Shown here in pieces: positions 5,240 through 59,219 of a stretch of DNA of 64,000 nucleotides (its first letter is position 1; the number at the start of each line of letters is the position of its first letter). This DNA comes from Macrostomum lignano (Eukaryota), in the NCBI GenBank assembly GCA_002269645.1, contig NIVC01003664.1:20263-84262 (forward strand), read 5' to 3'. The position numbers and the translations under genes are program-made. The notes below the pieces were generated by a model that was given only the letters and a program-made list of their open reading frames with translations, was not told where the DNA came from and ran no database searches.

Positions 5240-5356
5240 GGTCGCCATCATAAACCCGAAAGATCATAACCCCCGAAAACCAGAATAGCGTTGGACATTG
5301 CTAGCACTTTTGGAGTTATATTTCGGGTTTGTGATATTTAGGGTTTGTGATGCCCC
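5240..5356. mobile_element. Short inverted-repeat (MITE-like) element
   Basis: CATCATAAACCCGAAAGATCATAACCCCCGAAA (from 5246) is an imperfect inverted repeat of TTTCGGGTTTGTGATATTTAGGGTTTGTGATG (ending 5352). Confidence 0.5.
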
Positions 5357-6810
5357 CACAAGTGAATGAGTGAGAGATTCATGAATGCTGGAGAAAGTGA
5401 GTGAAAGTGAGCTGAGAGTGAGTGAGCAACTACTAGCACTTTGCCGGCAAGAAATGAAGCTGGACTGAAGCCGAGAGCCAGGTCACCCAGAATCCACATG
5501 CCATCTCTTACTTGCTGCAACTTGATGCAGCTAGCTGAGCACGAGAGGCGGGACCAGCCAACTCTTTCTTGATCTCAAAGCGGCCAGCCTGTCCTGTTCC
5601 AAATTTCTCAGTTTGCACCCTCATCTGCTGCCGTCCTCACTCCTTCCTCATCTAAGAGGCTGGATCAGGAGCCCCGACAGGCCCTCGCGAAGTGACCCTC
5701 AGGCGGGCGGCAGCTGGTAGCCCGGGCTTGGACTTTTTACCTCTCCTCCTCCTCTTTCTTCTCATCCTCACTTTTTTCTAACTGAGCAGAACCGATTGGC
5801 AAATAAATTATTTTTGGCGAAGAAATGGCGGATCGATCGGCTTGGCGTTTTCCCTGCCCCAGCTTCCCCAGGTGCGCGAGACCCTCCGCTGAGGGTGGGG
5901 GAAGCCATTTTTTAAGTCCCCCTTCTCCGATTTTTTCAAGATGACGATGATTCAGGAAATTCTTGAGATGGCAGAGGGTCCGGGCGGGCAACTGGGGATT
6001 TTTTAGCTGAGGATTAAAGATCGCCCGCTTGCAAAAAAATTGATGATGAAGCTGAGACTGTCTGGGGAAGCAGGCTAATAATATTTTTGGCCCAGCGCGG
6101 GACTAAATCAAAGGAAACCTGCGCTCAGGCTATGGGGCCTTTGCTGCCTTTGAGATGAGCAGTGCTCAAAGCAGAAGCACTCCAGCCGAGCAGTTTGGAG
6201 ACGTGTGTTGATGAAGCGTGAGGCATCTGGGAGAATCTGTTTGTTTTACTTGTCCAAGTTCATAGAAAAATGACTCACACACACATTCGTGAACTCACCT
6301 GCGATCAAACTGTAATATTTATTTTTTTAATTCTTTAATTTATGACCTCACTCATGAACTAATGAAACTCAGTCTAATTAATCAGCTCTCCCGTAAACTG
6401 ATAAACTCACTAATTGACTCGGTTTCAGTCATGTACTCATGATTTTAGAAACTTATTAATGAGATTATGATAAATTTATTAAGCCATAAATTCTTCAGCA
6501 TATGAGAATTGAATCGCAGGGGTCACAAAGCATTCGAGGTCAAAAATCGAGTAACCTGAGGCGAGCAATGAAGCGGTGAGCCCCTGCACCTGCACCCGAG
6601 CAATGCGACCTCTCAAATTTTGCTAGGGGAGTATGGAGGCACCTGGAGACGAGGATGTATATTACGAGCTAAAGCGACAGAAACGCCCTTGACGACCTTC
6701 TCAAAAGAAATCATTGAATATCTTGACGGCCTGAAATGCTGGTCACTTGCTGCCAGTGTGCCCAGAAATATCTAGAACGAATTCTGGGAAAGTAGTCTAG
6801 TAATTGAATT

Positions 6811-8010: not shown

Positions 8011-8609
8011 ATTTTTACTAGAGACAGAATGCAGATCTGAGGACGGCAAGCAGAGTAATGATAGCTGGCTTCGCCTGCTCCGAGAAGCCTTCTAAAAGCG
8101 GCAATCCGATCACTCTCTCTTCCCTTTTTCGCGAGCCAGAGCACAGCAGCTGATGACTCATGCTGCGGAGATCGGAGATGCGCAGGCTGGCAGGTGCGGA
8201 ACCCGTGGGATAAATGAGCATTATCGAAAAGACAATGCTCGCTCGTGTTCCGCATCAGAGTCAGCTGCTCTCACCCAAGCCTTTCATCAAACTTTCTTTT
8301 TTCTTTTTGAGACTTTTTTGAGATGAAAAAAGCTGACTGGAGAAATTCCTGCCAGCGGAAATCGCGGTAGACCCACCCCGATGCCTTTAGAGCGCCGCGC
8401 CTGCCGTGACCCGAGTAGAACTCGGACAATTCCGTGCTAACTTTTAATTACATTTTCCACGAATTCGAAGCTGCTTCAGTTTTAATTCTATTATGGAGAC
8501 TCGGCGCTACTCAAGCGCATCATTTTGTGCCTTGAATTTGCTTTGAATCTGACCGGTCACTGATTATGGGTCTGGGGCGGCTGCAGATCCGGGAATTGTG
8601 CATTGGCTG

Positions 8610-11315
8610 AGGGAGTGACATTGAGGATCTGGGTGAGGGAGTGGCATTGAGGATCTGGGTGAGGGAGTGACATTGAGGATCTGGGTGAGGGAGTGACATT
8701 GAGGATCTGGGCGAGGGAGTGAAATTGAGTGAGGGAGTGACATTGAGGATCTGGGTGAGGGAGTGGCATTGAGGATCTGGGTGAGGGAGTGGCATTGAGG
8801 ATCTGGGTGAGGGAGTGACATTGAGGATCTGGGTGAGGGAGTGACATTGAGGATCTGGGCGAGGGAGTGAAATTGAGTGAGGGAGTGACATTGAGGATCT
8901 GGGTGAGGGAGTGGCATTGAGGATCTGGGTGAGGGAGTGGCATTGAGGATCTGGGTGAGGGAGTGACATTGAGGATCTGGGTGAGGGAGTGACATTGAGG
9001 ATCTGGGCGAGGGAGTGAAATTGAGTGAGGGAGTGACATTGAGGATCTGGGTGAGGGAGTGGCATTGAGGATCTGGGTGAGGGAGTGGCATTGAGGATCT
9101 GGGTGAGGGAGTGACATTGAGGATCTGGGTGAGGGAGTGGCATTGAGGATCTGAGTGAGGGAGTGACATTGATGATCTGGGTGAGGGAGTGACATTGAGG
9201 ATCTGGGTGAGGGAGTGGCATTGAGGATCTGGGTGAGGGAGTGGCATTGAGGATCTGGGTGAGGGAGTGACATTGAGGATCTGGGTGAGGGAGTGACATT
9301 GAGGATCTGGGCGAGGGAGTGAAATTGAGTGAGGGAGTGACATTGAGGATCTGGGTGAGGGAGTGGCATTGAGGATCTGGGTGAGGGAGTGGCATTGAGG
9401 ATCTGGGTGAGGGAGTGACATTGAGGATCTGGGTGAGGGAGTGACATTGAGGATCTGGGCGAGGGAGTGAAATTGAGTGAGGGAGTGACATTGAGGATCT
9501 GGGTGAGGGAGTGGCATTGAGGATCTGGGTGAGGGAGTGGCATTGAGGATCTGGGTGAGGGAGTGACATTGAGGATCTGGGTGAGGGAGTGACATTGAGG
9601 ATCTGGGCGAGGGAGTGAAATTGAGTGAGGGAGTGACATTGAGGATCTGGGTGAGGGAGTGGCATTGAGGATCTGGGTGAGGGAGTGGCATTGAGGATCT
9701 GGGTGAGGGAGTGACATTGAGGATCTGGGTGAGGGAGTGGCATTGAGGATCTGAGTGAGGGAGTGACATTGATGATCTGGGTGAGGGAGTGACATTGAGG
9801 ATCTGGGTGAGGGAGTGGCATTGAGGATCTGGGTGAGGGAGTGGCATTGAGGATCTGGGTGAGGGAGTGACATTGAGGATCTGGGTGAGGGAGTGACATT
9901 GAGGATCTGGGCGAGGGAGTGAAATTGAGTGAGGGAGTGACATTGAGGATCTGGGTGAGGGAGTGGCATTGAGGATCTGGGTGAGGGAGTGGCATTGAGG
10001 ATCTGGGTGAGGGAGTGACATTGAGGATCTGGGTGAGGGAGTGACATTGAGGATCTGGGCGAGGGAGTGAAATTGAGTGAGGGAGTGACATTGAGGATCT
10101 GGGTGAGGGAGTGGCATTGAGGATCTGGGTGAGGGAGTGGCATTGAGGATCTGGGTGAGGGAGTGACATTGAGGATCTGGGTGAGGGAGTGGCATTGAGG
10201 ATCTGAGTGAGGGAGTGACATTGATGATCTGGGTGAGGGAGTGACATTGAGAATCTGGGTGAGGGAGTGACATTGATGATCTGGGTGAGGGAGTGGCATT
10301 GATGATCTGGCTGAGGGAGTGACATTGAGGATCTGAGTGAGGGAGTGGCATTGAGGATCTGAGTGAGGGAGTGACATTGATGATCTGGGTGAGGGAGTGG
10401 CATTGAGGATCTGGGTGAGGGAGTGACATTGAGGATCTGGGTGAGGGAGTGGCATTGAGGATCTGAGTGAGGGAGTGACATTGATGATCTGGGTGAGGGA
10501 GTGACATTGAGAATCTGGGTGAGGGAGTGACATTGAGGATCTGGGTGAGGGAGTGGCATTGATGATCTGGGTGAGGGAGTGACATTGAGGATCTGAGTGA
10601 GGGAGTGGCATTGAGGATCTGAGTGAGGGAGTGACATTGATGATCTGGGTGAGGGAGTGACATTGAGAATCTGGGTGAGGGAGTGACATTGAGGATCTGG
10701 GTGTGGGAGTGACATTGAGGATCTGGGTGAGGGAGTGGCATTGAGGATCTGGGTGAGGGAGTGACATTGAGAATCTGGGTGAGGGAGTGGCATTGAGGAT
10801 CTGGGTGAGGGAGTGACATTGAGGATCTGGGTGAGGGAGTGACATTAAGGATCTGGGTGAGGGAGTGACATTGAGGATCTGGGTGAGGGAGTGACATTGA
10901 GGATCTGGGTGAGGGAGTGACATTGAGGATCTGGGTGAGGGAGTGACATTGAGAATCTGGGTGAGGGAGTGACATTGAGAATCTGGGTGAGGGAGTGACA
11001 TTGAGGATCTGGGTGAGGGAGTGACATTAAGGATCTGGGTGAGGGAGTGACATTGAGAATCTGGGTGAGGGAGTGACATTGAGGATCTGGGTGAGGGAGT
11101 GACATTGAGGATCTGGGTGAGGGAGTGACATTGAGAATCTGGGTGAGGGAGTGACATTGAGAATCTGGGTGAGGGAGTGACATTGAGGATCCGAGTGAGG
11201 GAGTGAAATTGAGGATCCGAGTGAGGGAGTGACATTGAGGATCCGAGTGAGGGAGTGAAATTGAGGATCCGAGTGAGGGAGTGACATTGGTGATTTTGGT
11301 GAAGGAGTGACATTG
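8610..11315. repeat. 26-bp minisatellite (GAGGGAGTGACATTGAGGATCTGGGT)n with a 600-bp higher-order repeat
   Basis: About 100 units. A marker variant with an 18-bp truncated unit recurs at 8711, 8859, 9007, 9311, 9459, 9607, 9911 and 10059. Confidence 0.97.
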
Positions 11316-11811
11316 AGAAAACGTTTATACCTTTAAGTCTAGGCGAGCACCTTTATTTTGCAAGCAAGCAAGATGCACAAGTAATGTCCGAGAGGGCATA
11401 AACAGGGTCAACAAACCGGCCATGATCATCAGCAGAGTTGGGGAATGTATTGCCTGTGTGAGTCGAATTGAATTGAGGAGGTTGTGTCACATCAGAGAGC
11501 ATTTGACAACAATTGAGTCTCTGATTGCCTCCGCGGCTCGCAGCTCCTAAGACCCAATTGGGCAAGAAATCCCAGACAGTAAATTAATTTGCATCGATTC
11601 GACATGGCCATTTATCCAAGAGCATCCAATGCATTCTGTTCACTTGTATACCAGTTCCAAGTATGAAGTGGGCTACCGGTCATGCAGTTTACCTAATCGG
11701 AATAACAAGTATGCACTGAGACCTGCTCAAGGAAGTGACGATACCGAGAAAAATGGACAAATAGGCTTTGTAATAGTTGCCCTACTCTTCAATAAACAGG
11801 AGTCTTCACTT

Positions 11812-25682: not shown

Positions 25683-27441
25683 ATGAAGTCAGTTAAAAGT
25701 ACAATAAAGAGCACATGGACTCCGCTTTCAAAGGACGAGACAAATGCGGCTGTATGTTATACAGAATTATCTGTGAAATTTTTTACAGATTGGTGGATTT
25801 AGTCAATAATAATTAAACTTAATACAGCTTTCTCGTATATTAGGATCCATTGGTTTCGCGCAAAATGGCGTCGTATTTTTTTCATTTTTAAAAATTTCAT
25901 AGCACAAAATTATTATGCAGGCTTGAAAATACAATGACTTTTACTGCAACATGTACGAGCATTGTCTATACTTTAAACTGCTCTAAATGTAATCTATCAT
26001 ATGTTAATTTCATAATTTTGTTTGAAGTACCTAAAAAACACAAAAATAAACAATTAATAATTAAATAAATGAATGTTTAAAACTTTTCATAAATTATAAC
26101 TAACAGTTTGTTTTGAAAAGCAAATTGTAAAATTGTACTCTAAAAGTTTGGGCTACTATTTTGTTCTTTACCTCAAGATTATTTTCTTGGCCAAAAGTTA
26201 TACAGTACTCCAGTATGTACTTTGTTAATCATTTTAAAGCTTAGCTGAACCTTGATGAAAGACAACTCTTAAATTAAATATTTGACATAATATAAATGTT
26301 TAAAGCATCACTTTAATTAAATATAACTGGCTAGATTTGTAAAGATTTTTTCGTTTCATTAAATTTATGAAAAGCAAACCACCTCGTATTTATTTTATGC
26401 CTTTAGTTTTTACAGTAATGTCAATACTTGATGTAATTAAGCTAATTTCCTCTCCTGACTCATTTTAGATTTTTGAGGAACGACGTAACCTTTTAAACAA
26501 ATGGGTAAGCTCATTGGAGAAACATTCGTTATTGTTTATCATATAAAAAATCAGGAATTTTGAATTATGACTTGGTTTCAGTTCGCGAAATGGACCGACG
26601 AGCAGCGAAAGACGGCACTGAACGACCTGGTGCGAGCGTGCAACCAGTCCCAGATCGAACATCTGCACGAAGTCACGAAGCCCAGAGTGGTTCTGCACAA
26701 GGTGGACTTCACCCGCCAGCTGCCAAGGAGCCTCAGCTTGCTGCTGCTGTCCTACTTGGATCCGCGCAGCCTCTGTCGGGCGGCTCAGGTGACTCAAACT
26801 GCCGCCATGACTGGCCCCACCCACTTGCCACGCGACAACCTAGCGCACCTATACAGAACACCACACCCGATTACCACAACAAAGCTCACACTGGATTCCC
26901 TATCCCATCCGCTGACAGGTAAGCTGGTACTGGAACTGGCTGTGCGACTCTGACGAAGTCTGGCTGCCCAAGTGCGCCCGCCTTGGCTGGTTCCTGCCCG
27001 CCCAGGCGCATCGGGACGTTGAAAGCTTCACCTTCTGGACTGGCAAAGCCGTCACGCCCGGAGTCTACAAGCGGCTGTACTTGGAGAACCTCACCAGCCT
27101 GCAGGTATGAGAGGGAGAGTACGGAGGGAGAAGGAGAGAGGGTCCAGGTTCGACCCTGGGCTGTGGCACTCCGTCGACCTCAAGGAATAGTACAACAAAG
27201 CGTGCCTGGGGGGCATCGAATTCACTGCATTATTTAGTTAGTTAGTTGGTTAGTTAGCTCAGTTAGTTAGTAGTGAGTTAGTTAGTTTGTTTGTTTGTTT
27301 GTGAGTTAGTTAGTTAGTTATTTAGTTTGTTTGTTTGTTTGTTTGTTTGTTTGTTAGTTAGTTAGTGAGTTAGTTAGTTAGCTCAGTTAGTTAGTAGTGA
27401 GTTAGTTAGTTTGTTTGCTTGTGAGTTAGTTAGTTAGTTAT

Positions 27442-27510
<69 letters not shown>

Positions 27511-27559
27511 CAGTTAGTTAGTTCGTTAGTTAGTTAGTTAGTTAGTTACTTAGTCAGTG

Positions 27560-27625
<66 letters not shown>

Positions 27626-27716
27626 CTCAGTTAGTTAGTAGTGAGTTAGTTAGTTTGTTAGTTTGTTTGTTAGTTAGTTAGTTAGTTATTTAGTTTGTTA
27701 GTTTGTTTGTTAGTTT

Positions 27717-27772
<56 letters not shown>

Positions 27773-27807
27773 GTTAGTTAGTTAGTTAGTTAGTTAGTTT
27801 GTTAGTG

Positions 27808-27838
<31 letters not shown>

Positions 27839-27891
27839 GAGTTAGTTAGTTAGTTAGTCAGTGAGTTAGTTAGTTAGTTAGTTAGTTAGTC

Positions 27892-27954
<63 letters not shown>

Positions 27955-27955
27955 C

Positions 27956-28036
<81 letters not shown>

Positions 28037-31395: not shown

Positions 31396-31922
31396 AAATA
31401 TTTGTTGCCATTCAAATAGTACGAAGCTGAGAGCGCTGTATAAACGTTGGAGCAGTAACAGGAAAAAATTACCTTTTTATAAGATCACCTCACCCACTAA
31501 AGGGTCCTTCTGAGGCATACTGTAAAGCATCGCAGATTGATAGGAAACTATACTCGTATTATTTTTGTTGCTGACACAGCAGAAATAAAACCAATTTATT
31601 GTCAATCACTGCAAATTGGCCGACAAGTTTTTCTGGCTTTCGAATTCAGTGAGAATTTTGAATAAAATCTAGGATTTTTTCATTTCCGTCGTAATTCTCA
31701 GTCACCAGCAGCAGCATACAAAAACCTCTGAATATTAGTCATAGATCAGACCATATATGGAAAGTCTGCAATCAAAACGCATGTTAAGCATGTCCGCTTT
31801 TCTCACCAGAAAATTTATTACAATCGTTAAATAAAACAAAACTGATGCTTTTCCACTGTCCGGAAATGAAAAATTTCTGAAAATTATTAAATTTCTGCAG
31901 CTTTGAACCAATTCTAATGAAC

Positions 31923-32960
<1,038 letters not shown>

Positions 32961-36943: not shown

Positions 36944-37852
<909 letters not shown>

Positions 37853-37860
<8 letters not shown>

Positions 37861-40800
37861 GTGTTTACGTGGACTTTTTGGAAGTTCAGTAGCCTCGTTA
37901 GCTGGACCAACCGGTGTAGGTAGACCACTTAGGTGGACCACCAAATAATTTTGTCTCTGGTGGGGTTAAGACGTTGATGAGGATCTCACATTAATGTCAG
38001 GCGGGTCAAGAAAGGCTTAAGCAATTTTGGGATGTCTAGCATGGATTTTTCCAAAGTTATTTGCATTTCAGTTTAGCTGGACCTCCAGCCTGGTCTACCT
38101 AAACCGAGCGAGTCTGGTCCACGTAAACCGAAAAATTTTAGAAAATTTTTCGAAAATCGTCTGTTTGTGTCTGTTTGTGTCTGTTTGTGTATAGCAGTTA
38201 TTAAGCATAGATTAAATGCAAAACTGAATTTTTTACAGATCATTACCTTACGAACAAAGGGCTATGTTGGCATCATATTATGACCGCTACTGGCTTTAAA
38301 ACAATATGCGTTCAGTTCTTTGACATTCAAGTAGGTACGCAGGTTAATTAAAAATTCTGAAACCTCGTATGCGAAATGAATTTGATACAGTAAACTTTAA
38401 ACTCCATTTAATTAGCTCAGTTCCAGCAATTCCGGTATCGTACTCTGAGCACAGACTCACAGAGTAAGACACCAACGTAAAGAAATCCAATTCGCTAACC
38501 AGATCAAACGATAAAGACTCCGAGACAAGAAAGATATTTAAGTGAAGCTTAAATAGTATTCTTCAATGACTTCTCAAGAACTCCCAGTGGTCCTTGATAG
38601 CCACACTGTGTAAATGCGAATTTCTGAGGCTCTACCATTACACAAGAAGAAAATAGCAACTTCATGAATTAAGTGCTTGCCAATTCTATCCTAAACACTA
38701 TGGGATATCCTGTTCTATCCTCCTCCAATTTTGGAAGAAGAAGATCCTAAGCTGCAGCCTTTCAAGTGCAAAGTTGAAGATGCAATTTACCTAATTGAAA
38801 AGGACAATTCATACATGTACATGCAAAAGATTTGATCAAGAGGACGCAATTAAGAAGGGCCTTTTAACTAGCGATCGGGTCTCTGACTCTCTAGCAAAAG
38901 GTCGACTTGATTGCGGTCCCAGTAAAACTAAGAACGCATTAACAGTCAGCCTAACACTCACTGTCTGTTTGGTCCACGTAAACACATTTGCAGGAGTATA
39001 GGGTTGGAACAGACAGACAGACAGACCTCCCTTTCTATAATTGGCTGGTTAACACTTAGGAGGATAGATCCACCCCAACAATGGGACCGACCGCAGCCAA
39101 TAGGAAACCCGCAAGCGTTCTGAAGGTAAGACAGTGGAGAGAGGGATATATAATGTCTAAGCGGCTGGTCCACGTAAACCATGGCGTAGTGAGACCAGAC
39201 ACAGACAGTTTAAAAGAAAGTACTTATAATCCATACTATACAACTCTAAAGGATTGCAATTGTATAGATTAGAACGGTTTTTTATACTTAATAGGTCTAA
39301 TGTTAATCCTTACTCCAAGTTTCATCCATATATAAATTTATTGTGCCAAAAACTGTAATCTACAACCAAGATATGATGACCCGCAAAAAAGGACGCCAAG
39401 CCTAAAATAAAAACTAAAAAAACACCGTCGCAAAAAGCCACTGCGAAATCGAAGAAGCCGCATCGCCTGGTGAAAATCATCAGTCTGCTCGCAAATCCGT
39501 CGACACCGAGTCCAGAAAAGTGAGTTTCGTTTGATGATCTCAAAGTAGCTAGCTGCAAGGCCTGCAACTCAATTGCTGTAGAGAAGCTGGTCCACCTAAC
39601 CTACAGACACAACTGAATCAGCTCTCTCAGTCTGTTTGAGGCTTTGGCTCTCAGAAGGTGGTCCACCTAACCTACAGACACAACTCGAGCAGATTTCTCT
39701 GTCTGTTTGAGGCTCTGGCTCTCAGAGCCGCCGAGAAAGTTTAGTGCCGAGAATGCTTCAGTATGTTAGAATGCAATCAGAACAGATTCCTAGAAAGTGA
39801 GCTAGTCCAGCATCAAGGCAGAACATCTGGATGTGTAACGAGAGGCTCTCGGAGATTCCTGGCTCAGATTATCGCCTAGAAGTGCTGTAGAATAGCTGGT
39901 CCACCTAACCTACAGACACAACTCGAACAGATTTCTCTGTCTGTTTGAGGCTGTGGCTCTCAGAGCCGCCGAGAAAGTTTAGTGCCGAGAATGCTTCAGT
40001 TTTTTAGAATGCAATCAGAACAGATTCCTAGAAAGTGAGCTAGTCCAGCATCAAGGTAGAACATCTGGATGTGTAACGAGAGGCTCTCGGAGATTCCTGG
40101 CTCGGATTATCGCCTAGAAGTGCTTTGGAGTAGCTGGTCCACCTAACCTACAGACACAACTCGAACAGATTTCTCTGTCTGTTTGAGGCTCTGGCTCTCA
40201 GAGCCGCCGAGAAAGTTTAGTGCCGAGAATGCTTCAGTTTGTTAGAATGCAATCAGAACAGATTCCTAGAAAGTGAGCTAGTCCAGCATCAAGGCAGAAC
40301 ATCTGGATGTGTAACGAAAGTCTCTCGGAGACTCCTGGCTCAGATTATCGCCTAGAAGTGCTTTGGAGTAGCTGGTCCACCTAACCTACAGACACAACTC
40401 GAACAGATTTCTCTGTCTGTTTGAGGCTCTGGCTCTTAGAGCCGCCGAGAAAGTTTAGTGCCGAGAATGCTTCAGTTTGTTAGAATGCAATCAGAACAGA
40501 TTCCTAGAAAGTGAGCTAGTCCAGCATCAAGGCAGAACATCTGGATGTGTAACGAAAGTCTCTCGGAGACTCCTGGCTCAGATTATCGCCTAGAAGTGCT
40601 GTGGAGTAGCTGGTCCACCTAACCTACAGACACAACTCGAACAGATTTCTCTGACTGTTTAAGGCTCTGGCTCTTAGAGCCGCCGAGAAAGTTTAGTGCA
40701 GAAAATGTTTCAGTTTGTTAGAATGCAATCAGAACAGATTCCTAGAAAGTGAGCTAGTCCAGCATCAAGGTAGAACATCTGGATGTGTAACGAGAGGCTC

Positions 40801-43779
40801 TCGGAGATTCCTGGCTCAGATTATCGCCTAGAAGTGCTGTGGAGTAGCTGGTCCACCTAACCTACAGACACAACTCGAACAGATTTCTCTGTCTGTTTGA
40901 GGCTCTGGCTCTCAGAGCCGCCGAGAAAGTTTAGTGCCGAGAATGCTTCAGTTTGTTAGAATGCAATCAGAACAGATTCCTAGAAAGTGAGCTAGTCCAG
41001 CATCAAGGCAGAACATCTGGATGTGTAACGAGAGGCTCTCGGAGATTCCTGGCTCAGATTATCGCCAAGAAGTGCTGTAGAATAGCTGGTCCACCTAACC
41101 TACAGACACAACTCGAACAGATTTCTCTGTCTGTTTGAGGCTCTGGCTCTTAGGTGGTCCACATAACCTACAGACACAACTGAAGCAGCTCTCTCAGTCT
41201 GTTTGAGGCTTTGGCTCTCAGAAGGTGGTCCACCTAACCTACAGACACAACTCGAACAGATTTCTCTGTCTGTTTGAGGCTCTGGCTCTCAGAGCCGCCG
41301 AGAAAGTTTAGTGCAGAAAATGCTTCAGTTTGTTAGAATGCAATCAGAACAGATTCCTAGAAAGTGAGCTAGTCCAGCATCAAGGCAGAACATCTGGATG
41401 TGTAACGAAAGTCTCTCGGAGACTCCTGGCTCAGATTATCGCCTAGAAGTGCTTTGGAGTAGCTGGTCCACCTAACCTACAGACACAACTCGAACAGATT
41501 TCTCTGTCTGTTTGAGGCTCTGGCTCTCAGAGCCGCCGAGAAAGTTTAGTGCCGAGAATGCTTCAGTTTGTTAGAATGCAATCAGAACAGATTCCTAGAA
41601 AGTGAGCTAGTCCAGCATCAAGGCAGAACATCTGGATGTGTAACGAGAGGCTCTCGGAGATTCCTGGCTCAGATTATCGCCTAGAAGTGCTTTGGAGTAG
41701 CTGGTCCACCTAACCTACAGACACAACTCGAACAGATTTCTCTGTCTGTTTGAGGCTCTGGCTCTCAGAGCCGCCGAGAAAGTTTAGTGCCGAGAATGCT
41801 TCAGTTTGTTAGAATGCAATCAGAACAGATTCCTAGAAAGTGAGCTAGTCCAGCATCAAGGCAGAACATCTGGATGTGTAACGAGAGGCTCTCGGAGATT
41901 CCTGGCTCAGATTATCGCCTAGAAGTGCTGTGGAGTAGCTGGTCCACCTAACCTACAGACACAACTCGAACAGATTTCTCTGTCTGTTTGAGGCTCTGGC
42001 TCTTAGGTGGTCCACATAACCTACAGACACAACTGAAGCAGCTCTCTCAGTCTGTTTGAGGCTTTGGCTCTCAGAAGGTGGTCCACCTAACCTACAGACA
42101 CAACTCGAACAGATTTCTCTGTCTGTTTAGGCTCTGGCTCTTAGAGCCGCCGAGAAAGTTTAGTGCAGAAAATGCTTCAGTTTGTTAGAATGCAATCAGA
42201 ACAGATTCCTAGAAAGTGAGCTAGTCCAGCATCAAGGCAGAACATCTGGATGTGTAACGAGAGGCTCTCGGAGATTCCTGGCTCAGATTATCGCCTAGAA
42301 GTGCTGTGGAGTAGCTGGTCCACCTAACCTACAGACACAACTCGAACAGATTTCTCTGTCTGTTTGAGGCTCTGGCTCTTAGGTGGTCCACATAACCTAC
42401 AGACACAACTGAAGCAGCTCTCTCAGTCTGTTTGAGGCTTTGGCTCTCAGAAGGTGGTCCATCTAACCTACAGACACAACTCGAACAGATTTCTCTGTCT
42501 GTTTGAGGCTCTGGCTCTTAGGTGGTCCACATAACCTATAGACACAACTGAAGCAGCTCTCTCAGTCTGTTTGAGGCTTTGGCTCTCAGAAGGTGGTTCA
42601 CCTAACCTACAGACACAACTCGAACAGATTTCTCTGTCTGTTTGAGGCTCTGGCTCTCAGGTGGTCCACATAACCTACAGTCACAACTGGAACAGATTTC
42701 TGTGTCTGTTTGATTGTCAGTTAATTTTATTTTCTACCTTTGTAGGAGCCTGTGGTTGATTTTGTTCGCCTGAGCTCGACGAGACTGACTGCGTTTCACC
42801 GAGATGAAGGTTAAAACGAACTGTAAAAGAAGATTCAAACCACTAATTGACGAGAAATATAGAAAGGTTCATCATAGAGCTGAGCTGACGAAAGCGGATT
42901 CGATGGCTGAGTAAGCTGAAATTCGTGAGAGAGGCAATGACAGATCAATAACAGAAGCGGTCCCGGACCACGGAGGCAGGGAAGGTCCAGGAGAATATTT
43001 CGTAGAAAAATAAGAAGATTAAGCCATCATCTGCGTGAACGAAAAGATGAAAGTCGGTAAAATGATTGGCTTATCATATGATTGCTCACCAACTCATTCA
43101 GTATAATAGGACTGATGTAGTCAAATCAATTTAATTTCAGTTTTAGTAACTTTTGTCGTTATTAAAAATGCCCTTCAACTTCTTGTAGGCTCGTACTCGG
43201 ATGACCTTTTTTAACTAATGGAATCTTACGTTTGTTAACATGTATTTGAAGCATACATTTTGACCTAAATTAGTTTTAATGAGTTTACAGTTAGTATTTG
43301 ATATGATTCTGTATTTATTTTCAAAATGCTTTATTTTCATTCACCTTCTTGTATTCACGCGACGCAACTAACTAATGCGATCGTACATTTGTTTAACCCG
43401 ATTAACCCGATTAATAATGCTAAATAAATTGGTTTGAACTTGGGATATTTTCATTAAATGACGTCGTAACCCTTTTATCTGTTCTTTTTGAGAATTTCTG
43501 TTTTAATTAGTTCAAAAGAACAGTTTAAAGCAATAAATTTTCTACAACGAAAGAGGTCTAACTAAACCAACTGTTTTTTTGCGGTCCACCTAACCCGGTC
43601 CCCAAAACGTAGTTAGTGAACCACCACAGTTTCCCCGAACTGGCTATTCCGTCAAGTTAACAAAAAGATAACCCTAGCTAGCCTTTCGCGTTGTCAAAAC
43701 AGACTCTATTTTTTAACCGGAATTGCGTGGTCCACGTAACGCATTAACAAAACTCAGGTCCCGCTAAACACACAGACAG
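37853..43779. mobile_element. Putative TIR-bounded element body B (~5.9 kb) between (TCTG)n tracts
   Basis: The left end CTGTCTGTGTGTTTACGTGGAC and right end GGTCCCGCTAAACACACAGACAG are imperfect inverted repeats with 15 identical nt. It has many internal GGTCCAC[C/G/A]TAA motifs and no intact ORF. Confidence 0.55.
39588..42710. repeat. Composite satellite: 238-bp unit interleaved with ~68-71-bp short units
   Basis: GGTCCACCTAACC recurs at 39898, 40136, 40374, 40612, 40850 and 41088, a period of 238. The short unit corresponds to the first part of the long unit. Confidence 0.95.
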
Positions 43780-43789
43780 TCGTAAGAGT

Positions 43790-44318
<529 letters not shown>

Positions 44319-44587
44319 CCCCTGTAAGTATGGATATATCAATGAGCAAACATTGTAAAGAAACCCAAAACAGCTGAATATCAACAGCCTTTATCTGCTG
44401 GAATCGCTGGCAATGGCCAGTCAGTCATGGAGGTGACATCAATTTGGTTTTATTTATTAGGCCTGACAGATCGAGTTGATGATTGGCAAATTATTATTTG
44501 TTCGAATTAAGCCATTGGTTTTATTAAGGATAGTAAAAAACAATCCTCCAGCAGCTTTAAAGTTCGAACGGCAGCCTTCATCATCGC

Positions 44588-46298
44588 TCAAGCGGAACCG
44601 TCTGTAGACCTGCCCCAGCGGAATTCGTTGCACTCCTTGGCTGCGCGACACGAGTCTGCAATTGTTTAACCAACGTAGACTATTCAGAGGACTTCGGGCT
44701 GTGTATAAACTACTGAGCGAATGTGCAATGACAGTTTGCGAAATGGACTAAGACTAATCACGAACAAAACCAAAGCCAGTGCACACGGCACTCAGCCCCG
44801 GTTATCAACGCACCAAGGTCGCAGCAGACGCCAGGAGCGGAGCAGCGGCCGCCGCGCTCCAAAGTGCACCGCGGCAGACTGCGCCGACAAGTCAGCCGGC
44901 CGAGAAAGGCGCGCATCTCGTCGGCTCCCGCGCAGTCCTTCCTGGCCGCATTTCCCACGATGCAGCCGAAGTTGCCGCAGCAGAGGCTGCGACCGAGGCA
45001 GACGCCTTTGCCGGATCCGCAGGATGGTTTGCAGGCGCTCAACTGCTTGCCTGTCGTGCGAGTGAAATTCGTGCGTGTACAGTTGTTTGTCTACCAATGT
45101 GTGAACTCCACAGCATTAAAAAGTCGCCACCTTAGAGAGTGCGCAGTAGATTCTAGCTCAGTATTGACTTTTGAGTGACGAGGGATTGGGAAGAGCGGAG
45201 GACGAAGATTGGATGGATTGAAGCTTCCACCCGGTTTTCATTGTTTTTTCAAGCATTAATATCAGAATGGTTGGCCAGGTGATAGACGCAAAGGGGCAAA
45301 GGGTGGCGCGACTTTTTTTAATGTTGTTGAGTTTATTTGGGGGCCATGGTTCACCGTCCCATCCTCCCACATTCTGCCCATTCCGCTGACTCCTGAACGC
45401 GTCAATACTGTACGCAGGCACGCACTCATACACACGCTCACACAGAGTGTACAGCGGCCGCGTCGGACCAGGTGTCATGGCGCAAAAATCGGACGCGTCT
45501 AGCACTGAACTTCTCTGCCCGCGAAATTGTAAGCATTCGTCAGCGCCTATCTTTTGTCATCAAGTTTGATCATTGCTCTGTAGTTACACGAGCTATCGGA
45601 AAAATTTTCACCTGCCACACGAGGTCACGACACTTTCAACTCTTGCGGAGAGAAAGAAACCCGATCAAATTAATAGCTGCTAAGGCTTGAATGAGGCAAC
45701 CGTGATTTCCACCTGATGTGGATTCAAGCAGACTGGGATTGAGGGCGAGAATGTCTAGGATATTCACTGGCTAATTAATTTCATTTTCAATCTTCTGTAT
45801 CACGGAGGGCGAGAAAGGCAAAGCACCAGAACTTCAACGCTTTTGTTTAGCTTGACAGTTTGTACAAATTAGCTCTTACTAGTTCACTCACTAGTTTCAC
45901 TCACTCACTAGTTTCACTCACTAGTTTCACTCACTAGTTTCATTTACTAGATTCACTCACTAGATTCACTCACTAGATTCACTAGTTTCACTCACTAGTT
46001 TCACTCACTCACTAGTTTCACTCACTAGATTCACTCACTAGTTTCACTCACTCACTAGTTTCACTCACTCACTAGTTTCACTCACTAGTTTCACTCACTA
46101 GTTTCACTCACTCACTAGTTTCACTCACTCACTAGTTTCATTCACTAGTTTCACTCCCTAGTTTCACTCACCGGGAAAGCTTCGCTTCTTGCCACCAGGT
46201 GGGCAGTTGGCAACAAAGCAGAGCTCGCACAGGTGGCAAGCGGCCAGCAGCAGGGCGAGCAGCCTCACCCAGGACTTGGCATTCAGCAGTGCAGCCAT
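44588..46298 (-). CDS. Vasopressin/oxytocin-type neuropeptide-neurophysin precursor, 143 aa
   Basis: Exons 46298-46172 (signal peptide, CFVANCPPG, GKKR), 45050-44814 and 44655-44588 have GT-AG junctions in phase 1/1. The neurophysin domain has 14 Cys (CKPSCGSGKGVCLGRSLCCGNFGC...GGRCSAPGVCCDLDSCRAAKEC). Confidence 0.95.
45880..46170. repeat. Variable 11-15-bp repeat (CACT)1-2-AGTTTCA in intron 1 of the neuropeptide gene
   Basis: Seen directly. It abuts the donor site. Confidence 0.9.
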
Positions 46299-46590
46299 CA
46301 AGAGAACAAAGGTGGATCGAGTGACAAACAGTGACAATCGGATGGTTTCTGAAGAGGAGCTTCCCTAAAATTTGATAGATGAGCAGCAACTGACTCAATT
46401 TTCTGCCTCAGCAACAGGTTTGCAGTAGAAGGAACAGTGGGGTCTGCGCTCTCAGCCCCGCGCCCGTTGCCGTCGTATTTATTCACGGCCGGTGGGCCAA
46501 TGAGATTCGTCTGAAATAGAAATTTTAATAACCCTCTTCTAAGCATTTAGTCTTAAAAATGACGATATTATGGCCTTCCGAAATCGTGAA

Positions 46591-47400
46591 TCAGTGACAC
46601 TGCATTCTTATCAGTGACACTGAATCCTTATCAGTGACACCGCATTCTTATCAGTGACACTGAATCCTTATCAGTGACACCGCATCCTTATCAGTGACAC
46701 CGCATCCTTATCAGTGACACCGCATCCTTATCAGTGACACTGCATCCTTATCAGTGACACCGCATCCTTATCAGTGACACCGCATCCTTATCAGTGACAC
46801 TGCATCCTTATCAGTGACACCGCATCCTTATCAGTGACACCGCATCCTTATCAGTGACACTGCATCCTTATCAGTGACACTGCATCCTTATCAGTGACAC
46901 TGCATCCTTATCAGTGACACTGAATCCTTATCAGTGACACCGCATCCTTATCAGTGACACTGCATCCTTATCAGTGACACTGAATCCTTATCAGTGACAC
47001 CGCATCCTTATCAGTGACACCGCATCCTTATCAGTGACACTGCATCCTTATCAGTGACACTGAATCCTTATCAGTGACACCGCATCCTTATCAGTGACAC
47101 TGCATCCTTATCAGTGACACTGCATCCTTATCAGTGACACCGCATCCTTATCAGTGACACTGCATCCTTATCAGTGACACTGAATCCTTATCAGTGACAC
47201 CGCATCCTTATCAGTGACACTGCATCCTTATCAGTGACACTGCATCCTTATCAGGGGCATTTAATGATTATCAGTGACACTTCATCCTTATCAGTGACAC
47301 TGCATCCTTATCAGTGACACTTCATCCTTATCAGTGACGCTGCATCCTTATCAGTGACACCGCATCCTTATCAGGGGCATTTAATCATTATCAGTGACAC
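46591..47400. repeat. 20-bp minisatellite (TCAGTGACACTGCATCCTTA)n
   Basis: About 40 copies. Confidence 0.97.
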
Positions 47401-53134: not shown

Positions 53135-56100
53135 ATGGCTGCTCAGCAGCAACATGCGGCTTCCGCGGAGCCAATGCAGCCGCAGCCGCCAGCTGAGATG
53201 GTCGACCTAGCAACCAGCTTGAGCGACCGTGAGTTGGTTAGGCGGATGTCAATCAAATGGCGCGACGCCGGCCGGCTAAAGGTGCGTGAGAAGCGGACTG
53301 GGCCAACCGCGCCCAACTCGGCAGTTTGCAGCCCAACGCCGGGGCAGAGGTTGCCTAGGCAACAACAGGCACTGGCGCAGCACCAAGAACATCAGTCCAC
53401 ATCGCACAGACGGCGTTCGTTGATGCGCCAGCTGTCTGACATTGCTGACGGTGGCAATGGCAGCAGCGGCGGTGGCACTGGTGAAAGTGGAGTCGTCTTC
53501 GAACTCGGGCGGCGTGGGCCTCCGGCGCGGCACAGGCGCCAAATGTCGGTACCATCGACTGCTCAGGCGGCTGCTGCGGCTGCCGCAATAGCAGCTTCTG
53601 CCGCCGCAACAGCCGACGATGCCGAGGCCAGTGGAAGATTGACATCCGTCGGTGACGACTCCGTTGAAGGCATTAAGGACAGCGCGGCGCCGGGACCGGA
53701 GTCACAGACACAGACGGAGGTGGCTGAGCCATCAACAGCGTCGGCTACCAAGGACGACAACGCCAACGACAACAAGGACATCTTTGAAAACGACGACTCT
53801 TCTTCGGTTGTGTCATCATCCAGGTCGCAGGCACCGGTGACGACCGGCGCCGATGGGTCCCAGGGCTCGCCATCGGCTCGGCACTTGCACACGCCGTCCT
53901 GTCTGAACCGGCCTGGCTCGTTCAGCTCAACCATCGACCCCGTAGACATTGATCGGCTTAGCCAGTACTCGCTATACATGGTGCACGATGCTAGGTTCTA
54001 CTTTCAGCATCCCTACCTGCGCATGATCTGCACTTTACTAGTCGTTTTTCTTAACTTCCTAATCTACGCCGAGGATCCCATAGCCGACTCGTCGCAGGTG
54101 TGCAGCATCCCCGTGTTAGGCAACGTGTTCGCATTCGTTTTCAGCCGGTATCCGCCCAACGCATGGAGCCTGCTCAAAGTGATCATGTGGCTGCTGGGAA
54201 TCCTGGTTGGCATCATCGCTGGAAAACTGTGTCACGTATTTGTGTTCAGTGAGACTGTCTTAAGTCAAACTCTTTGCTTATTTGTTTAAATTGTTTAGGT
54301 GAAGTGGCAGAATCATCGGCAAATTCGCTGGGTGGCTAAAAATATCCAAGATGTATTAAACAAGAATTGTACAAACCTACAACTTTCAGACCGTTGGTTT
54401 CGGCTGAAAATGTTTGCTAACGACGAAGGCTCCTGGATGACAATGTGGTTCTCAACCATCATATCCGTGTACATTTTCTCCAACATTTACAACGCTTTCC
54501 TGCTGACCCTCGGCGGCACGTCCAACATCCCCTATCTCATCAGTATGCAGATGGGCATCAAGAACTCCACGTTCATGAAGATGGCAGCCACAGGCACCTG
54601 GCTTGGCGACTTCATGACCGCCTGGATGGTGAGCGACATGATGCTACAGGAGCGTCTTTATCCAAGCTGGAACCGCTTCATCCGGCAGTGGTGGCGCTCT
54701 GGCTACACTCGGATCGTCATGTTCTGGCTGCTGCTAATCAGCTTGTGCACCACCGTTATCACAGTGATCTGCACCGACATCATCCGCTGGGACTACCTCA
54801 ACAGGGGCTTTGCTCCGTCAAACGAACTGTCGCGGGCTTTCTTAGCTGCATCAATTCTGAGCCTTGACCTGCTGATTGTCATGCAGGATTGGGACTTTCC
54901 TAACTTCACTAACAGCCTTGACGTTCGGCTGCCCGGCGTAGCCAAAGCTATCTACGCGTTCGATATCCGCATACCGGACTGGTTTAAACGGATTGTCGAC
55001 GACGACGTTTGGACGGTGCACATCACCGGGAAATGGTTCAACTATGGAGTACTGTTCGTAGTTATGTGTCTGGATTTGAACATGTGGAAGAATCAGGTTA
55101 GTCAGGTTTTGGGGTTTAGAAGAAGAATTAGATTAAGGGGTTGGAAATGCGTAGCCGAAATCTCCACTTTCTACATGCACAAGCTTGACAAGCCCTATAC
55201 TTCACAAACACCAAGCTTGACAAGCCCTAAACTTCACAAACACCAAGCTTGACAAGCCCTATACTTCACAAACACCAAGCTTGACAAGCCCTAAACTTCA
55301 CAAACACCAAGCTTGACAAGCCCTATACTTCACAAACACCAAGCTTGACAAGCCCTATACTTCACAAACACCAAGCTTGACAAGCCCTAAACTTCACAAA
55401 CACCAAGCTTGACAAGCCCTAAACTTCACAAACACCAAGCTTGACAAGCCCTAAACTTCACAAACACCAAGCTTGACAAGCCCTATACTTCACAAACACC
55501 AAGCTTGACAAGCCCTAAACTTCACAAACACCAAGCTTGACAAGCCCTAAACTTCACAAACACCAAGCTTGACAAGCCCTATACTTCACAAACACCAAGC
55601 TTGACAAGCCCTATACTTCACAAACACCAAGCTTGACAAGCCCTAAACTTCACAAACACCAAGCTTGACAAGCCCTATACTTCACAAACACCAAGCTTGA
55701 CAAGCCCTAAACTTCACAAACACCAAGCTTGACAAGCCCTAAACTTCACAAACACCAAGCTTGACAAGCCCTATACTTCACAAACACCAAGCTTGACAAG
55801 CCCTAAACTTCACAAACACCAAGCTTGACAAGCCCTATACTTCACAAACACCAAGCTTGACAAGCCCTAAACTTCACAAACACCAAGCTTGACAAGCCCT
55901 AAACTTCACAAACACCAAGCTTGACAAGCCCTAAACTTCACAAACACCAAGCTTGACAAGCCCTAAACTTCACAAACACCAAGCTTGACAAGCCCTAAAC
56001 TTCACAAACACCAAGCTTGACAAGCCCTAAACTTCACAAACACCAAGCTTGACAAGCCCTAAACTTCACAAACACCAAGCTTGACAAGCCCTAAACTTCA

Positions 56101-59100
56101 CAAACACCAAGCTTGACAAGCCCTAAACTTCACAAACACCAAGCTTGACAAGCCCTAAACTTCACAAACACCAAGCTTGACAAGCCCTATACTTCACAAA
56201 CACCAAGCTTGACAAGCCCTAAACTTCACAAACACCAAGCTTGACAAGCCCTAAACTTCACAAACACCAAGCTTGACAAGCCCTATACTTCACAAACACC
56301 AAGCTTGACAAGCCCTATACTTCACAAACACCAAGCTTGACAAGCCCTAAACTTCACAAACACCAAGCTTGACAAGCCCTATACTTCACAAACACCAAGC
56401 TTGACAAGCCCTATACTTCACAAACACCAAGCTTGACAAGCCCTAAACTTCACAAAAACCAAGCTTGACAAGCCCTATACTTCACAAACACCAAGCTTGA
56501 CAAGCCCTAAACTTCACAAACACCAAGCTTGACAAGCCCTAAACTTCACAAACACCAAGCTTGACAAGCCCTATACTTCACAAACACCAAGCTTGACAAG
56601 CCCTAAACTTCACAAACACCAAGCTTGACAAGCCCTATACTTCACAAACACCAAGCTTGACAAGCCCTAAACTTCACAAACACCAAGCTTGACAAGCCCT
56701 AAACTTCACAAACACCAAGCTTGACAAGCCCTAAACTTCACAAACACCAAGCTTGACAAGCCCTAAACTTCACAAACACCAAGCTTGACAAGCCCTAAAC
56801 TTCACAAACACCAAGCTTGACAAGCCCTAAACTTCACAAACACCAAGCTTGACAAGCCCTATACTTCACAAACACCAAGCTTGACAAGCCCTAAACTTCA
56901 CAAACACCAAGCTTGACAAGCCCTAAACTTCACAAACACCAAGCTTGACAAGCCCTATACTTCACAAACACCAAGCTTGACAAGCCCTAAACTTCACAAA
57001 CACCAAGCTTGACAAGCCCTAAACTTCACAAACACCAAGCTTGACAAGCCCTATACTTCACAAACACCAAGCTTGACAAGCCCTATACTTCACAAACACC
57101 AAGCTTGACAAGCCCTAAACTTCACAAACACCAAGCTTGACAAGCCCTATACTTCACAAACACCAAGCTTGACAAGCCCTATACTTCACAAACACCAAGC
57201 TTGACAAGCCCTAAACTTCACAAAAACCAAGCTTGACAAGCCCTATACTTCACAAACACCAAGCTTGACAAGCCCTAAACTTCACAAACACCAAGCTTGA
57301 CAAGCCCTAAACTTCACAAACACCAAGCTTGACAAGCCCTATACTTCACAAACACCAAGCTTGACAAGCCCTAAACTTCACAAACACCAAGCTTGACAAG
57401 CCCTATACTTCACAAACACCAAGCTTGACAAGCCCTAAACTTCACAAACACCAAGCTTGACAAGCCCTAAACTTCACAAACACCAAGCTTGACAAGCCCT
57501 AAACTTCACAAACACCAAGCTTGACAAGCCCTAAACTTCACAAACACCAAGCTTGACAAGCCCTAAACTTCACAAACACCAAGCTTGACAAGCCCTAAAC
57601 TTCACAAACACCAAGCTTGACAAGCCCTAAACTTCACAAACACCAAGCTTGACAAGCCCTAAACTTCACAAACACCAAGCTTGACAAGCCCTATACTTCA
57701 CAAACACCAAGCTTGACAAGCCCTAAACTTCACAAACACCAAGCTTGACAAGCCCTAAACTTCACAAACACCAAGCTTGACAAGCCCTATACTTCACAAA
57801 CACCAAGCTTGACAAGCCCTATACTTCACAAACACCAAGCTTGACAAGCCCTAAACTTCACAAACACCAAGCTTGACAAGCCCTATACTTCACAAACACC
57901 AAGCTTGACAAGCCCTATACTTCACAAACACCAAGCTTGACAAGCCCTAAACTTCACAAAAACCAAGCTTGACAAGCCCTATACTTCACAAACACCAAGC
58001 TTGACAAGCCCTAAACTTCACAAACACCAAGCTTGACAAGCCCTAAACTTCACAAACACCAAGCTTGACAAGCCCTATACTTCACAAACACCAAGCTTGA
58101 CAAGCCCTATACTTCACAAACACCAAGCTTGACAAGCCCTAAACTTCACAAAAACCAAGCTTGACAAGCCCTAAACTTCACAAACACCAAGCTTGACAAG
58201 CCCTAAACTTCACAAACACCAAGCTTGACAAGCCCTAAACTTCACAAACACCAAGCTTGACAAGCCCTATACTTCACAAACACCAAGCTTGACAAGCCCT
58301 ATACTTCACAAACACCAAGCTTGACAAGCCCTAAACTTCACAAAAACCAAGCTTGACAAGCCCTATACTTCACAAACACCAAGCTTGACAAGCCCTAAAC
58401 TTCACAAACACCAAGCTTGACAAGCCCCAAAGCTTTTGCCAGCAAGCTATTTTTAATTTTTGCAAGCATGCTCTTCTTTACTCTGCTAATCATACCAATA
58501 CTCAACCCGTTTATCAGATGATCTACTCGCCCTGCGAATACGGCCAATACGTCGGACCTTACGGCTCCATCTACACCGTGCACAACGAGACCGAACTCGC
58601 ACTAGTAGATTGCAGCAGCGACAATCACACGCTTAACTATGAGTACAGAAATCAAACTTTTGCGCCAGACGGCGAGACCCTTCTGTCTAAGGACATCTGG
58701 ACCCATTCGCGCTACACCGGCTACCCGCTGTACGTGAAGCTCAGCTCGTTCCTGCTCAGCCTTACCGCTTTCGCCGTATTCGGAGCTTTAGTTGTGATAT
58801 TCGGCCGCTATAGTGAAGAGCACAGAGACGTCTACCAGGGCCGGATGAAGAAAAATCGCACACTGAACAATCTGCTGGTTAGACACAGCGTGCACAGTCT
58901 CGACAACATTGTCGAAGTTGAGGGCGAAGCCAACGCAGCAGCAGCAGCAGATGCGGTCGCAGCTTTTAAGCCGTCAACGCCGCTGAAGTCAACTGTGTCA
59001 GACCCCGGCGTGCAGCGATTGAAGCGGCTCAAGAAGATGAAACTGTCAGATCGGCAACATCAGCGTCAGGAGCATCGCCAGAAGCTGATGAAACGGGCAG

Positions 59101-59219
59101 CTCAATACTGCTCTTGCTGCGTCTGCTCGTCTCGTTGCTGCTGCTGCGAGTCGAGGCCCACCGATGGGGCGGCATCGGGCCAAGGCCCAGCTGCTGGCGG
59201 CCAGACAATGGACGTGTGA
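53135..59219 (+). CDS. TMEM117: Transmembrane protein 117 homologue with long N-terminal extension, 840 aa
   Basis: Exons 53135-54248, 54390-55096 and 58518-59219 (phase 1, 0). Recognised motifs include RFYFQHP, NFLIYAEDP, RLKMF..DEGSWMTM, GTWLGDFMTAWMVSDMMLQ, SRAFLA, DLLIVMQDWDFP, HITGKWFNYG, DLNMWKNQ and EYGQYVGP. Confidence 0.93.
55175..58428. repeat. 32-bp minisatellite (AAGCTTGACAAGCCCTA[A/T]ACTTCACAAACACC)n filling TMEM117 intron 2
   Basis: About 100 copies in two main variants. Confidence 0.98.

Follow-up and report, generated by a model that had tools for sequence, protein, structure and literature searches.

An intact vasopressin/oxytocin-type neurophysin precursor gene from a flatworm, Macrostomum lignano

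A 64-kb stretch of the genome of Macrostomum lignano (the whole of which is referred to here as the window) carries on its minus strand, at positions 44588-46298, an intact gene of the vasopressin/oxytocin (VP/OT) type that runs through three exons from ATG to TGA. These coordinates agree to the base with an earlier annotation made from the DNA letters (the original prediction), which had suspected a flatworm gene before the organism was named. The spliced coding sequence of 432 nt stays in frame and encodes a precursor of 143 amino acids; both introns are of the GT-AG type. The precursor reads MAALLNAKSWVRLLALLLAACHLCEL (predicted signal peptide), CFVANCPPG (nonapeptide), GKKR (predicted amidation and cleavage site) and SFPGKQLSACKPSCGSGKGVCLGRSLCCGNFGCIVGNAARKDCAGADEMRAFLGRLTCRRSLPRCTLERGGRCSAPGVCCDLDSCRAAKECNEFRWGRSTDGSA (neurophysin, beginning with SFPGKQLSAC and ending with GSA). 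Of its 18 cysteines, 14 belong to the neurophysin, and the signal region and the peptide have two each. The n-region of the signal peptide contains K8 and R12, the h-region extends from L13 to A20, and the c-region reads CHLCEL. The ATG at 46298 is the first in-frame ATG of the exon-1 open reading frame (ORF). When the first donor is left unspliced, an in-frame TGA follows immediately, so the GTGAGT repeats within intron 1 offer no productive alternative splice. An exhaustive search of exon combinations returned a single solution, which reproduces a protein already deposited in GenBank, and tblastn matches in the window were confined to the three exons, with no second copy of the gene. The original prediction of a complete gene with signal peptide, CFVANCPPG, GKKR and a 14-cysteine neurophysin is thus matched residue for residue by a transcript-derived GenBank model. 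It had also remarked that the hormone exon was missing from the ORF track and that the neurophysin appeared there only as a fragment; exon 1 indeed lies in an ORF of 57 amino acids, under the 60-amino-acid threshold, and exon 2 in one of 94 amino acids.

The assignment to the neurophysin family is carried by several comparisons. The spliced protein scores 54.8 bits for Pfam Hormone_5 (PF00184, neurophysin), for which the cutoff is 27.2 (E=1.8e-14). Among PDB sequences, bovine neurophysin II aligns with it at E=2.6e-7, every cysteine included. Across the bovine neurophysin I/II entries 1NPO, 2BN2, 1JK4, 1JK6, and 2HNU, E-values range from 2.6e-7 to 4.8e-5 and all 14 cysteines align; the M. lignano protein differs by a one-residue insertion between the first and second cysteines of the domain (C-KPS-C versus C-LP-C). 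An exhaustive HMMER search across 1.84 billion proteins supplied 55 representative homologues, which we tabulated for comparison with the wider family. The neurophysin cysteines at positions 49, 53, 60, 66, 67, 72, 82, 97, 104, 112, 118, 119, 124, and 130 align with the 14 cysteines of bovine neurophysin II and of these homologues. Within the family alignment, C27, C32, P33, and G35 are invariant and N31 occurs in at least 90% of sequences; the peptide has the form C-x-x-x-[ND]-C-P-x-G, with Phe2 and Val3 inside the family range. Directly after the peptide stands GKKR, the same signal as in both precursors of platytocin, the VP/OT-type peptide of polyclad flatworms. When the window is translated in six frames, the pattern C-x4-CP-x-GG-basic-basic is met a single time, and 300 first-order Markov simulations never produced it; together with the single exon solution, this rules out a chance ORF or spurious splicing.

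An AlphaFold2 model of the full precursor, built on 38 homologues, has a mean predicted local distance difference test score (pLDDT) of 74.6. When this model was compared with the PDB by Foldseek, the only significant matches were nine bovine neurophysin entries (probability 1.00; target-normalised template-modelling score 0.42-0.50). The signal peptide of the model continues as one helix into the hormone (H7-30), which makes the model uninformative on hormone docking. A 1035-amino-acid repeat protein (P0005), the second-best match of the exhaustive protein search at E=3e-18 over 15 stretches, proved to be a repeat artefact confined to residues 92-116 and was discarded. A scan for bacterial promoters and terminators was uninformative for a eukaryotic gene.

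Table 1. Features of the VP/OT-type gene and its surroundings, in window coordinates.
Feature	Position	Strand	Remarks
Whole coding span of the VP/OT-type neurophysin precursor gene	44588..46298	-	Corresponds to GenBank gene Mlig003431 g1 or g3; range 1711 nt
Exon 1	46298-46172	-	127 nt
Predicted signal peptide MAALLNAKSWVRLLALLLAACHLCEL, codons 1-26	46221..46298	-	Translation; cleavage site inferred
Nonapeptide CFVANCPPG, Cys27-Gly35, predicted Cys1-Cys6 disulfide ring	46194..46220	-	Translation and family alignment
GKKR: Gly36, amide donor; Lys-Lys-Arg, prohormone convertase site (predicted)	46182..46193	-	Translation
End of exon 1, start of neurophysin: S40 F41 P42 and first base of G43	46172..46181	-	
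Intron 1	45051..46171	-	1121 nt, phase 1, GTGAGT...ACAG
13/17-nt tandem array (GTGAGTGAAACTAGTGA-like), about 18-21 units	45878..46171	-	Fills the 5' end of intron 1, starts exactly at the donor
Exon 2	44814..45050	-	237 nt; neurophysin core G43-L121 and first base of D122; 12 of 14 Cys
Intron 2	44656..44813	-	158 nt, phase 1, GTGCGT...GCAG
Exon 3	44588..44655	-	68 nt including TGA; neurophysin C-terminus D122-A143 with Cys124 and Cys130
AATAAA, candidate poly(A) signal	44520..44525	-	63 nt past the stop; inferred

The gene is already known. From end to end, the precursor shows 100% identity to M. lignano PAA50340.1 and PAA63765.1 (hypothetical protein BOX15_Mlig003431g1/g3), whose locus on NIVC01003664.1 (GCA_002269645.1) is identical to the window; the deposited gene likewise spans 1711 nt, and its coding sequence is divided into exons exactly as modelled here. 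The GenBank annotation of the M. lignano assembly was derived solely from transcript assemblies, both RNA-seq-guided and de novo, in which ORFs were called by TransDecoder (Wudarski et al. 2017, PMC5730564), and both splice junctions are therefore transcript-supported, though not copy-specifically. In particular, the junction from 46172 to 45050, on which the original prediction depended, is present in the transcript-derived model PAA50340.1, which joins precisely these exons, with the same restriction as to copy. The evidence, although indirect, thus indicates that the precursor gene is transcribed and spliced as modelled. A 2020 review had considered the VP/OT system lost in Platyhelminthes (PMC7181382); it predates the work of Kobayashi et al. 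(2022) on polyclad platytocin, in which VP/vasotocin precursor genes were found among other flatworms only in M. lignano, namely PAA85176.1, PAA50340.1, PAA46766.1, and PAA87831.1 (PMC8896804). The proteins that we recovered are exactly these four. The suspicion that the sequence might already be on record was therefore well founded, since PAA50340.1 had been recognised as a VP/vasotocin precursor by 2022; a copy with 99% identity bears the UniRef name Oxytocin. Neither CFVANCPPG nor Mlig003431 occurs in searchable full texts, a search that does not extend to the figures and supplement of PMC8896804, and our literature search found no functional or peptidomic work on the M. lignano peptide. 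The abbreviation M.lig in Thiel et al. 2018 denotes achatin, not vasotocin. What we add are small points that apply to both M. lignano paralog families described below: leucine precedes the first cysteine of the hormone, two residues of the neurophysin hormone pocket (Arg8 and Glu47 of the bovine protein) are replaced, and intron 1 is shifted.

The nonapeptide itself is less unusual than the original prediction had implied in stressing neutral residues at positions 4 and 8. Proline is the commonest residue 8 among the 55 homologues (15, ahead of 12 with arginine and 10 with isoleucine), and it is present in platytocin and Platynereis vasotocin. The peptide is indeed uncharged, but so are oxytocin itself and CFITNCPPG, which is widespread in arthropods. 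The emphasis on Ala4 was justified: residue 4 is threonine in 25 homologues, glutamine in 13, arginine in 10, serine in five, isoleucine in one, and asparagine in one, and alanine in 0 of 55. To judge from these sequences, Pro8 and the absence of charge are ordinary, and Ala4 is the sole distinctive residue.

The peptide had been likened to annetocin (CFVRNCPTG) and Lys-conopressin G (CFIRNCPKG), which are spiralian amidated nonapeptides of the VP/OT type built on a CF[VI]xNCPxG frame. This resemblance is real (7/9 and 6/9 residues identical, respectively), but both peptides have Arg4, neither has Pro8, and they are not the nearest known. The closest peptide found is the CFVRNCPPG of Platynereis dumerilii vasotocin-neurophysin (A6YIC5), identical at 8/9 residues and embedded in the same precursor layout; it differs in having Arg4 instead of Ala4, alanine before the first cysteine, and the canonical Arg8 and Glu47 in its neurophysin. 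Within the same phylum, the platytocin precursors of the polyclads Stylochoplana pusilla (BCO16375.1) and Notocomplana humilis share the architecture, GKKR, and the 14-cysteine neurophysin (PMC8896804). Platytocin (CFIRNCPPG) agrees with CFVANCPPG at 7/9 residues including Pro8, with Ile3 and Arg4 in place of Val3 and Ala4, and the precursors are about 38% identical. In the polyclad precursors, unlike those of M. lignano, position -1 is occupied by serine or alanine, and the neurophysin loop takes the canonical form C-A-[IL]-E-N-E-N-P-H-P-C, which includes the conserved glutamate. Platytocin has a known receptor (LC597867), a known pattern of expression, and a described physiology.

Comparison with a second M. 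lignano paralog, Mlig001406g1 (PAA87831.1; positions 3001-5406 of our locus L005, on NIVC01000215.1), is especially informative. Its precursor is 48% identical to that of the window gene and contains CFINNCPPG followed by GKR and a 14-cysteine neurophysin; the predicted CFINNCPPG-NH2 has a calculated [M+H]+ of 961.402. The two genes have the same three exons with phase-1 introns at matching positions and Glu-Leu before the first cysteine of the hormone. The second paralog differs in Ile3 and Asn4, in its GKR site, and in a shorter N-terminal arm of the neurophysin. It is much older than the near-identical copies of the window gene considered below. The peptide core, the processing site, and all 14 cysteines are retained at 48% identity, a stronger argument for function than the conservation among those copies and one that implies long-term purifying selection.

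We solved exon structures from genomic loci for the second paralog, a chiton (Liolophura), a nemertean (Tubulanus), and tree shrew OXT. An ancestral intron shared by all five genes compared, intron 2 is in phase 1 and interrupts the third codon past the Cys-Cys pair (CC-x-x-/x, with the slash marking the intron) identically in each. Intron 1 of the chiton, nemertean, and tree shrew genes is in phase 0 directly before the first neurophysin cysteine. The intron 1 of M. lignano is a phase-1 intron, displaced upstream from the outgroup site by 14 nt in this gene and by 5 nt in the second paralog; in both, it follows the basic site by three codons. Overall, the layout is thus classical with a lineage-specific shift of intron 1. 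Of the classic three-exon layout claimed originally, the three exons and the place of intron 2 stand, and intron 1 departs from it in its phase (1 rather than 0) and in its position 14 nt upstream of the canonical one.

In crystal structures of the bovine proteins, Glu47 of neurophysin binds the alpha-amino group of hormone Cys1 and Arg8 supports this contact. An alignment of both M. lignano families with bovine neurophysin II and the 55 homologues revealed that four conserved positions, these two among them, are replaced in both families. Arg8, which is arginine in 42 of the 55 homologues, corresponds to Ser47 in this gene and to aspartate in the second paralog; Glu47 (glutamate in 50/55, and in at least 90% of 38 named homologues) corresponds to Ala85 and valine. 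At the positions of Pro24 (proline in 45/55) and Pro53 (40/55), this gene has Arg63 and Thr96, respectively, and the second paralog has glutamate and alanine. The loop between the seventh and eighth neurophysin cysteines comprises 14 residues, compared with nine in the bovine protein, and falls in a low-confidence part of the AlphaFold2 model. Inside this longer loop, just after the position aligned with Glu47, the window gene encodes Asp86-Glu87, which might substitute for Glu47. The corresponding loop of the second paralog is without any acidic residue.

The assembly contains four copies of the window gene's family: the window copy and those at loci that we designate L001, L003, and L004. 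Three of the four, including the window copy, are intact. The window copy, L001, and L003 share a TMEM117 gene as a neighbor; L004 (g2, PAA85176.1) has different flanks, with TMEM117 not annotated within the 10-kb flanks that were retrieved. Exons are more conserved than introns. Between the window copy and L004, mismatches number 5/429 in exons and 65/1173 in introns (Fisher p=4e-5); between the window copy and L001, they number 1/432 and 53/1267, respectively (Fisher p=4e-6). Expressed as divergence between copies, intron 1 differs by 4.8-5.6% and exons by 0.2-1.2%. The protein encoded by g2 lacks Asp86 and carries Thr105Ala and Leu106Ser, all of these differences falling in loops. Differences that distinguish the copies include T/C at position 60 of the coding sequence, changes in g2 at codons 73, 83, 86, 105, and 106, and the indels of g4 described below.

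Divergence between the window and L001 is uneven along the locus (gene positions 1200-2311, window about 43988-45099). It amounts to ~5% in intron 1 and 3-8% upstream. From the last part of intron 1 to a point 600 nt into the 3' flank, exon 2, intron 2, and exon 3 included, there is almost none, and beyond this point homology collapses. This pattern suggests gene conversion or a mosaic history rather than selection alone. The near-perfect match of intron 2 and of the 600-nt 3' flank between the window and L001 may reflect recent duplication or gene conversion over the 3' half, and the argument for selection therefore rests mainly on L004.

Tandem repeats are prominent in and around the gene. 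Every unit of the intron-1 array carries a donor-like GTGAGT, of which only the first is productive, and the number of units differs in L001, where the gene measures 2065 nt compared with 1711 nt in the window. A (TGTC)x132 array lies ~270 nt 3' of the stop codon, and a 20-mer, ATCAGTGACACTGCATCCTT, is repeated 40 times ~290 nt 5' of the ATG (43789-44318 and 46590-47400, respectively). Further tandem repeats occupy 4102-5198, 8604-11317, 27230-28036, 31922-32957, 36945-37864, 39659-42713, and 55180-58431. Repeats in the window include a 26-mer present 107 times, which generates three stop-free ORFs of 757-918 amino acids on one strand, as well as (TTAG)x202, two (CTGT)n arrays, a 238-nt satellite, and a 32-mer present 102 times. 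This abundance fits the 15% of simple and tandem repeats estimated for the M. lignano genome (PMC5730564). Exons of the TMEM117-family gene (Pfam PF15113, up to 329 bits) lie on the plus strand at 53135-54289, 54299-55252, and 58518-59219, and the 32-mer array is located inside one of its introns. Two long minus-strand ORFs at 424-3698 encode cadherin repeats (Pfam PF00028; 145 bits for one and 98 for the other) and probably represent exons belonging to a large cadherin gene, which extends beyond the window.

We consider the window gene to be one of several near-identical copies of a functional M. lignano gene for a VP/OT-type (vasotocin-related) preprohormone, a reading to which we assign a probability of roughly 85%. 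It rests on the intact three-exon reading frame, the 14-cysteine neurophysin, the C-x4-C-P-x-G core followed by G-KKR, the greater conservation of exons than of introns, and identity to the GenBank record. If the precursor follows standard neuropeptide biosynthesis, its signal peptide would be removed, most likely after Leu26, and Cys27 and Cys32 would close a six-residue ring. A prohormone convertase would cut after Arg39, a carboxypeptidase would trim Lys-Lys-Arg, and peptidylglycine alpha-amidating monooxygenase would convert Gly36 into the amide of Gly35, giving CFVANCPPG-NH2 (calculated [M+H]+ 904.38). The neurophysin of 104 residues would be packaged with the peptide in dense-core vesicles of a few neurons. 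Once released from these neurons, the peptide may act on a rhodopsin-type G-protein-coupled receptor to influence water balance, egg laying, and chemosensory behaviour, by analogy with polyclad platytocin (PMC8896804).

Several points weigh against this reading. The secreted, amidated peptide is a prediction from the sequence of the precursor. The four copies are at least 95% identical, so RNA-seq reads cannot be assigned among them and transcript support is not copy-specific. Kobayashi et al. reported no clear orthologue of a VP/OT receptor in M. lignano (PMC8896804), and our own search of the literature on this question turned up nothing pertinent. The hormone-binding residues Arg8 and Glu47 are absent from their aligned columns (Ser47 and Ala85), although these residues are a conserved feature of the family rather than a criterion that defines it. 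One copy, g4 (positions 10001-11710 of L003, on NIVC01004709.1; PAA46766.1), carries two indels in exon 2, +1 G and -1 G, separated by 61 nt, that place 21 residues out of frame and remove two neurophysin cysteines; it also contains a TC>CG change, and the locus is otherwise almost identical to the window. Finally, leucine occupies position -1 in both M. lignano families (CHLCEL/CF and CSLAEL/CF, with the slash marking the cut), and the leading candidate for signal peptidase cleavage in this gene is nearly level with the next.

This last point bears on where the mature peptide begins. Across a set of 85 non-redundant signal peptides from homologues, Cys1 is preceded by alanine in 52, glycine in 17, serine in 10, threonine in three, and cysteine in three; leucine occurs in 0/85. 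We scored cleavage with the eukaryotic weight matrix of von Heijne (1986), an old matrix whose column sums, as used here, equal 161 in 14/15 columns. It places the accepted site first in 75/85 homologues and is therefore valid for this purpose. For this gene, cleavage at L26/C27 ranks first with 8.0 (the mean of the 85 homologues is 8.6), followed by L23/C24 with 7.9; for the second paralog, the site before Cys1 again ranks first (10.2), ahead of A21/E22 (9.7). The margins of 0.1 and 0.6 compare with a median of 4.7, and equally small margins are found in 15/85 ordinary precursors. Leucine at -1, together with the two extra cysteines upstream, renders the mature N-terminus less certain. Cleavage directly before Cys1, which the original prediction had assumed, is accordingly still the top-ranked choice, but by a narrow margin and at an unprecedented residue. 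CFVANCPPG-NH2 is our best prediction of the mature peptide, with its N-terminus the least secure step.

The same gene could instead yield a non-classical product if signal peptidase cut further upstream, after Leu23, Cys21, or Cys24, to leave an N-terminally extended amidated peptide. The candidates are CELCFVANCPPG-NH2, HLCELCFVANCPPG-NH2, and ELCFVANCPPG-NH2, in each of which the ring cysteine would have no free alpha-amino group; calculated [M+H]+ values for extended forms are 1146.507, 1249.516, 1499.659, and 1600.653. This outcome, which we regard as unlikely, would make sense of the leucine at -1 and of the retention of C-x-L-[C/A]-E-L before Cys1 between paralogs that are otherwise only 48% identical; moreover, SLA/EL of the second paralog is a textbook (-3,-1) site, and the residues that bind the alpha-amino group are correspondingly lost in both paralogs along with Pro24 and Pro53. 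The canonical site nevertheless ranks first in both paralogs, the matrix is an old one, ordinary homologues can be just as ambiguous, two of the extended forms would contain an awkward odd number of cysteines, and Asp86-Glu87, one or two residues past the aligned Glu47, might take over its role. Far less probable still is a decaying or functionless ligand gene: one made redundant by the other copies of a recently polyploid genome, transcribed but, with its receptor lost, no longer under selection for hormone function. Such decay would accord with the reported lack of a clear receptor orthologue, with the absence of the VP/OT system from freshwater planarians and parasitic flatworms (PMC8896804, PMC7181382), with the frameshifting indels of g4, and with the replaced pocket residues of the neurophysin. 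It is countered by the intact state of three of the four copies, that of the window among them, by exon divergence 4-20 times below intron divergence, and by the long-term purifying selection implied by the peptide core, amidation and cleavage site, and 14 cysteines that both families retain. The g4 indels, in a locus otherwise near-identical to the window, are either long-read assembly errors or the mark of a single defective allele.

A functional VP/OT-type gene therefore remains our preferred reading, and within it the leucine at -1, the loss of the Arg8/Glu47 clamp, and the shift of intron 1 bear on whether M. lignano retains a classical system or a remodelled one, as does the reported lack of a receptor orthologue. 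It is tempting to speculate, though we think it doubtful, that ligand and carrier have been remodelled together in the Macrostomum lineage, such that the peptide is extended or otherwise non-classical or the neurophysin no longer binds it in the classical manner; this idea arises because Glu-Leu precedes Cys1 and Arg8/Glu47 are lost in both families and because no clear receptor orthologue was reported. If it were true, the peptide might signal through a receptor that is not recognisable as a VP/OT orthologue, and the failure to find one would then be explained. For M. lignano, a flatworm model that is transgenic and regenerates, our analysis provides a checked model of the gene, the precise peptide predicted, and its mass. 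A 2022 study lists the M. lignano gene in support of the survival of VP/OT-type signalling among free-living marine flatworms (PMC8896804).

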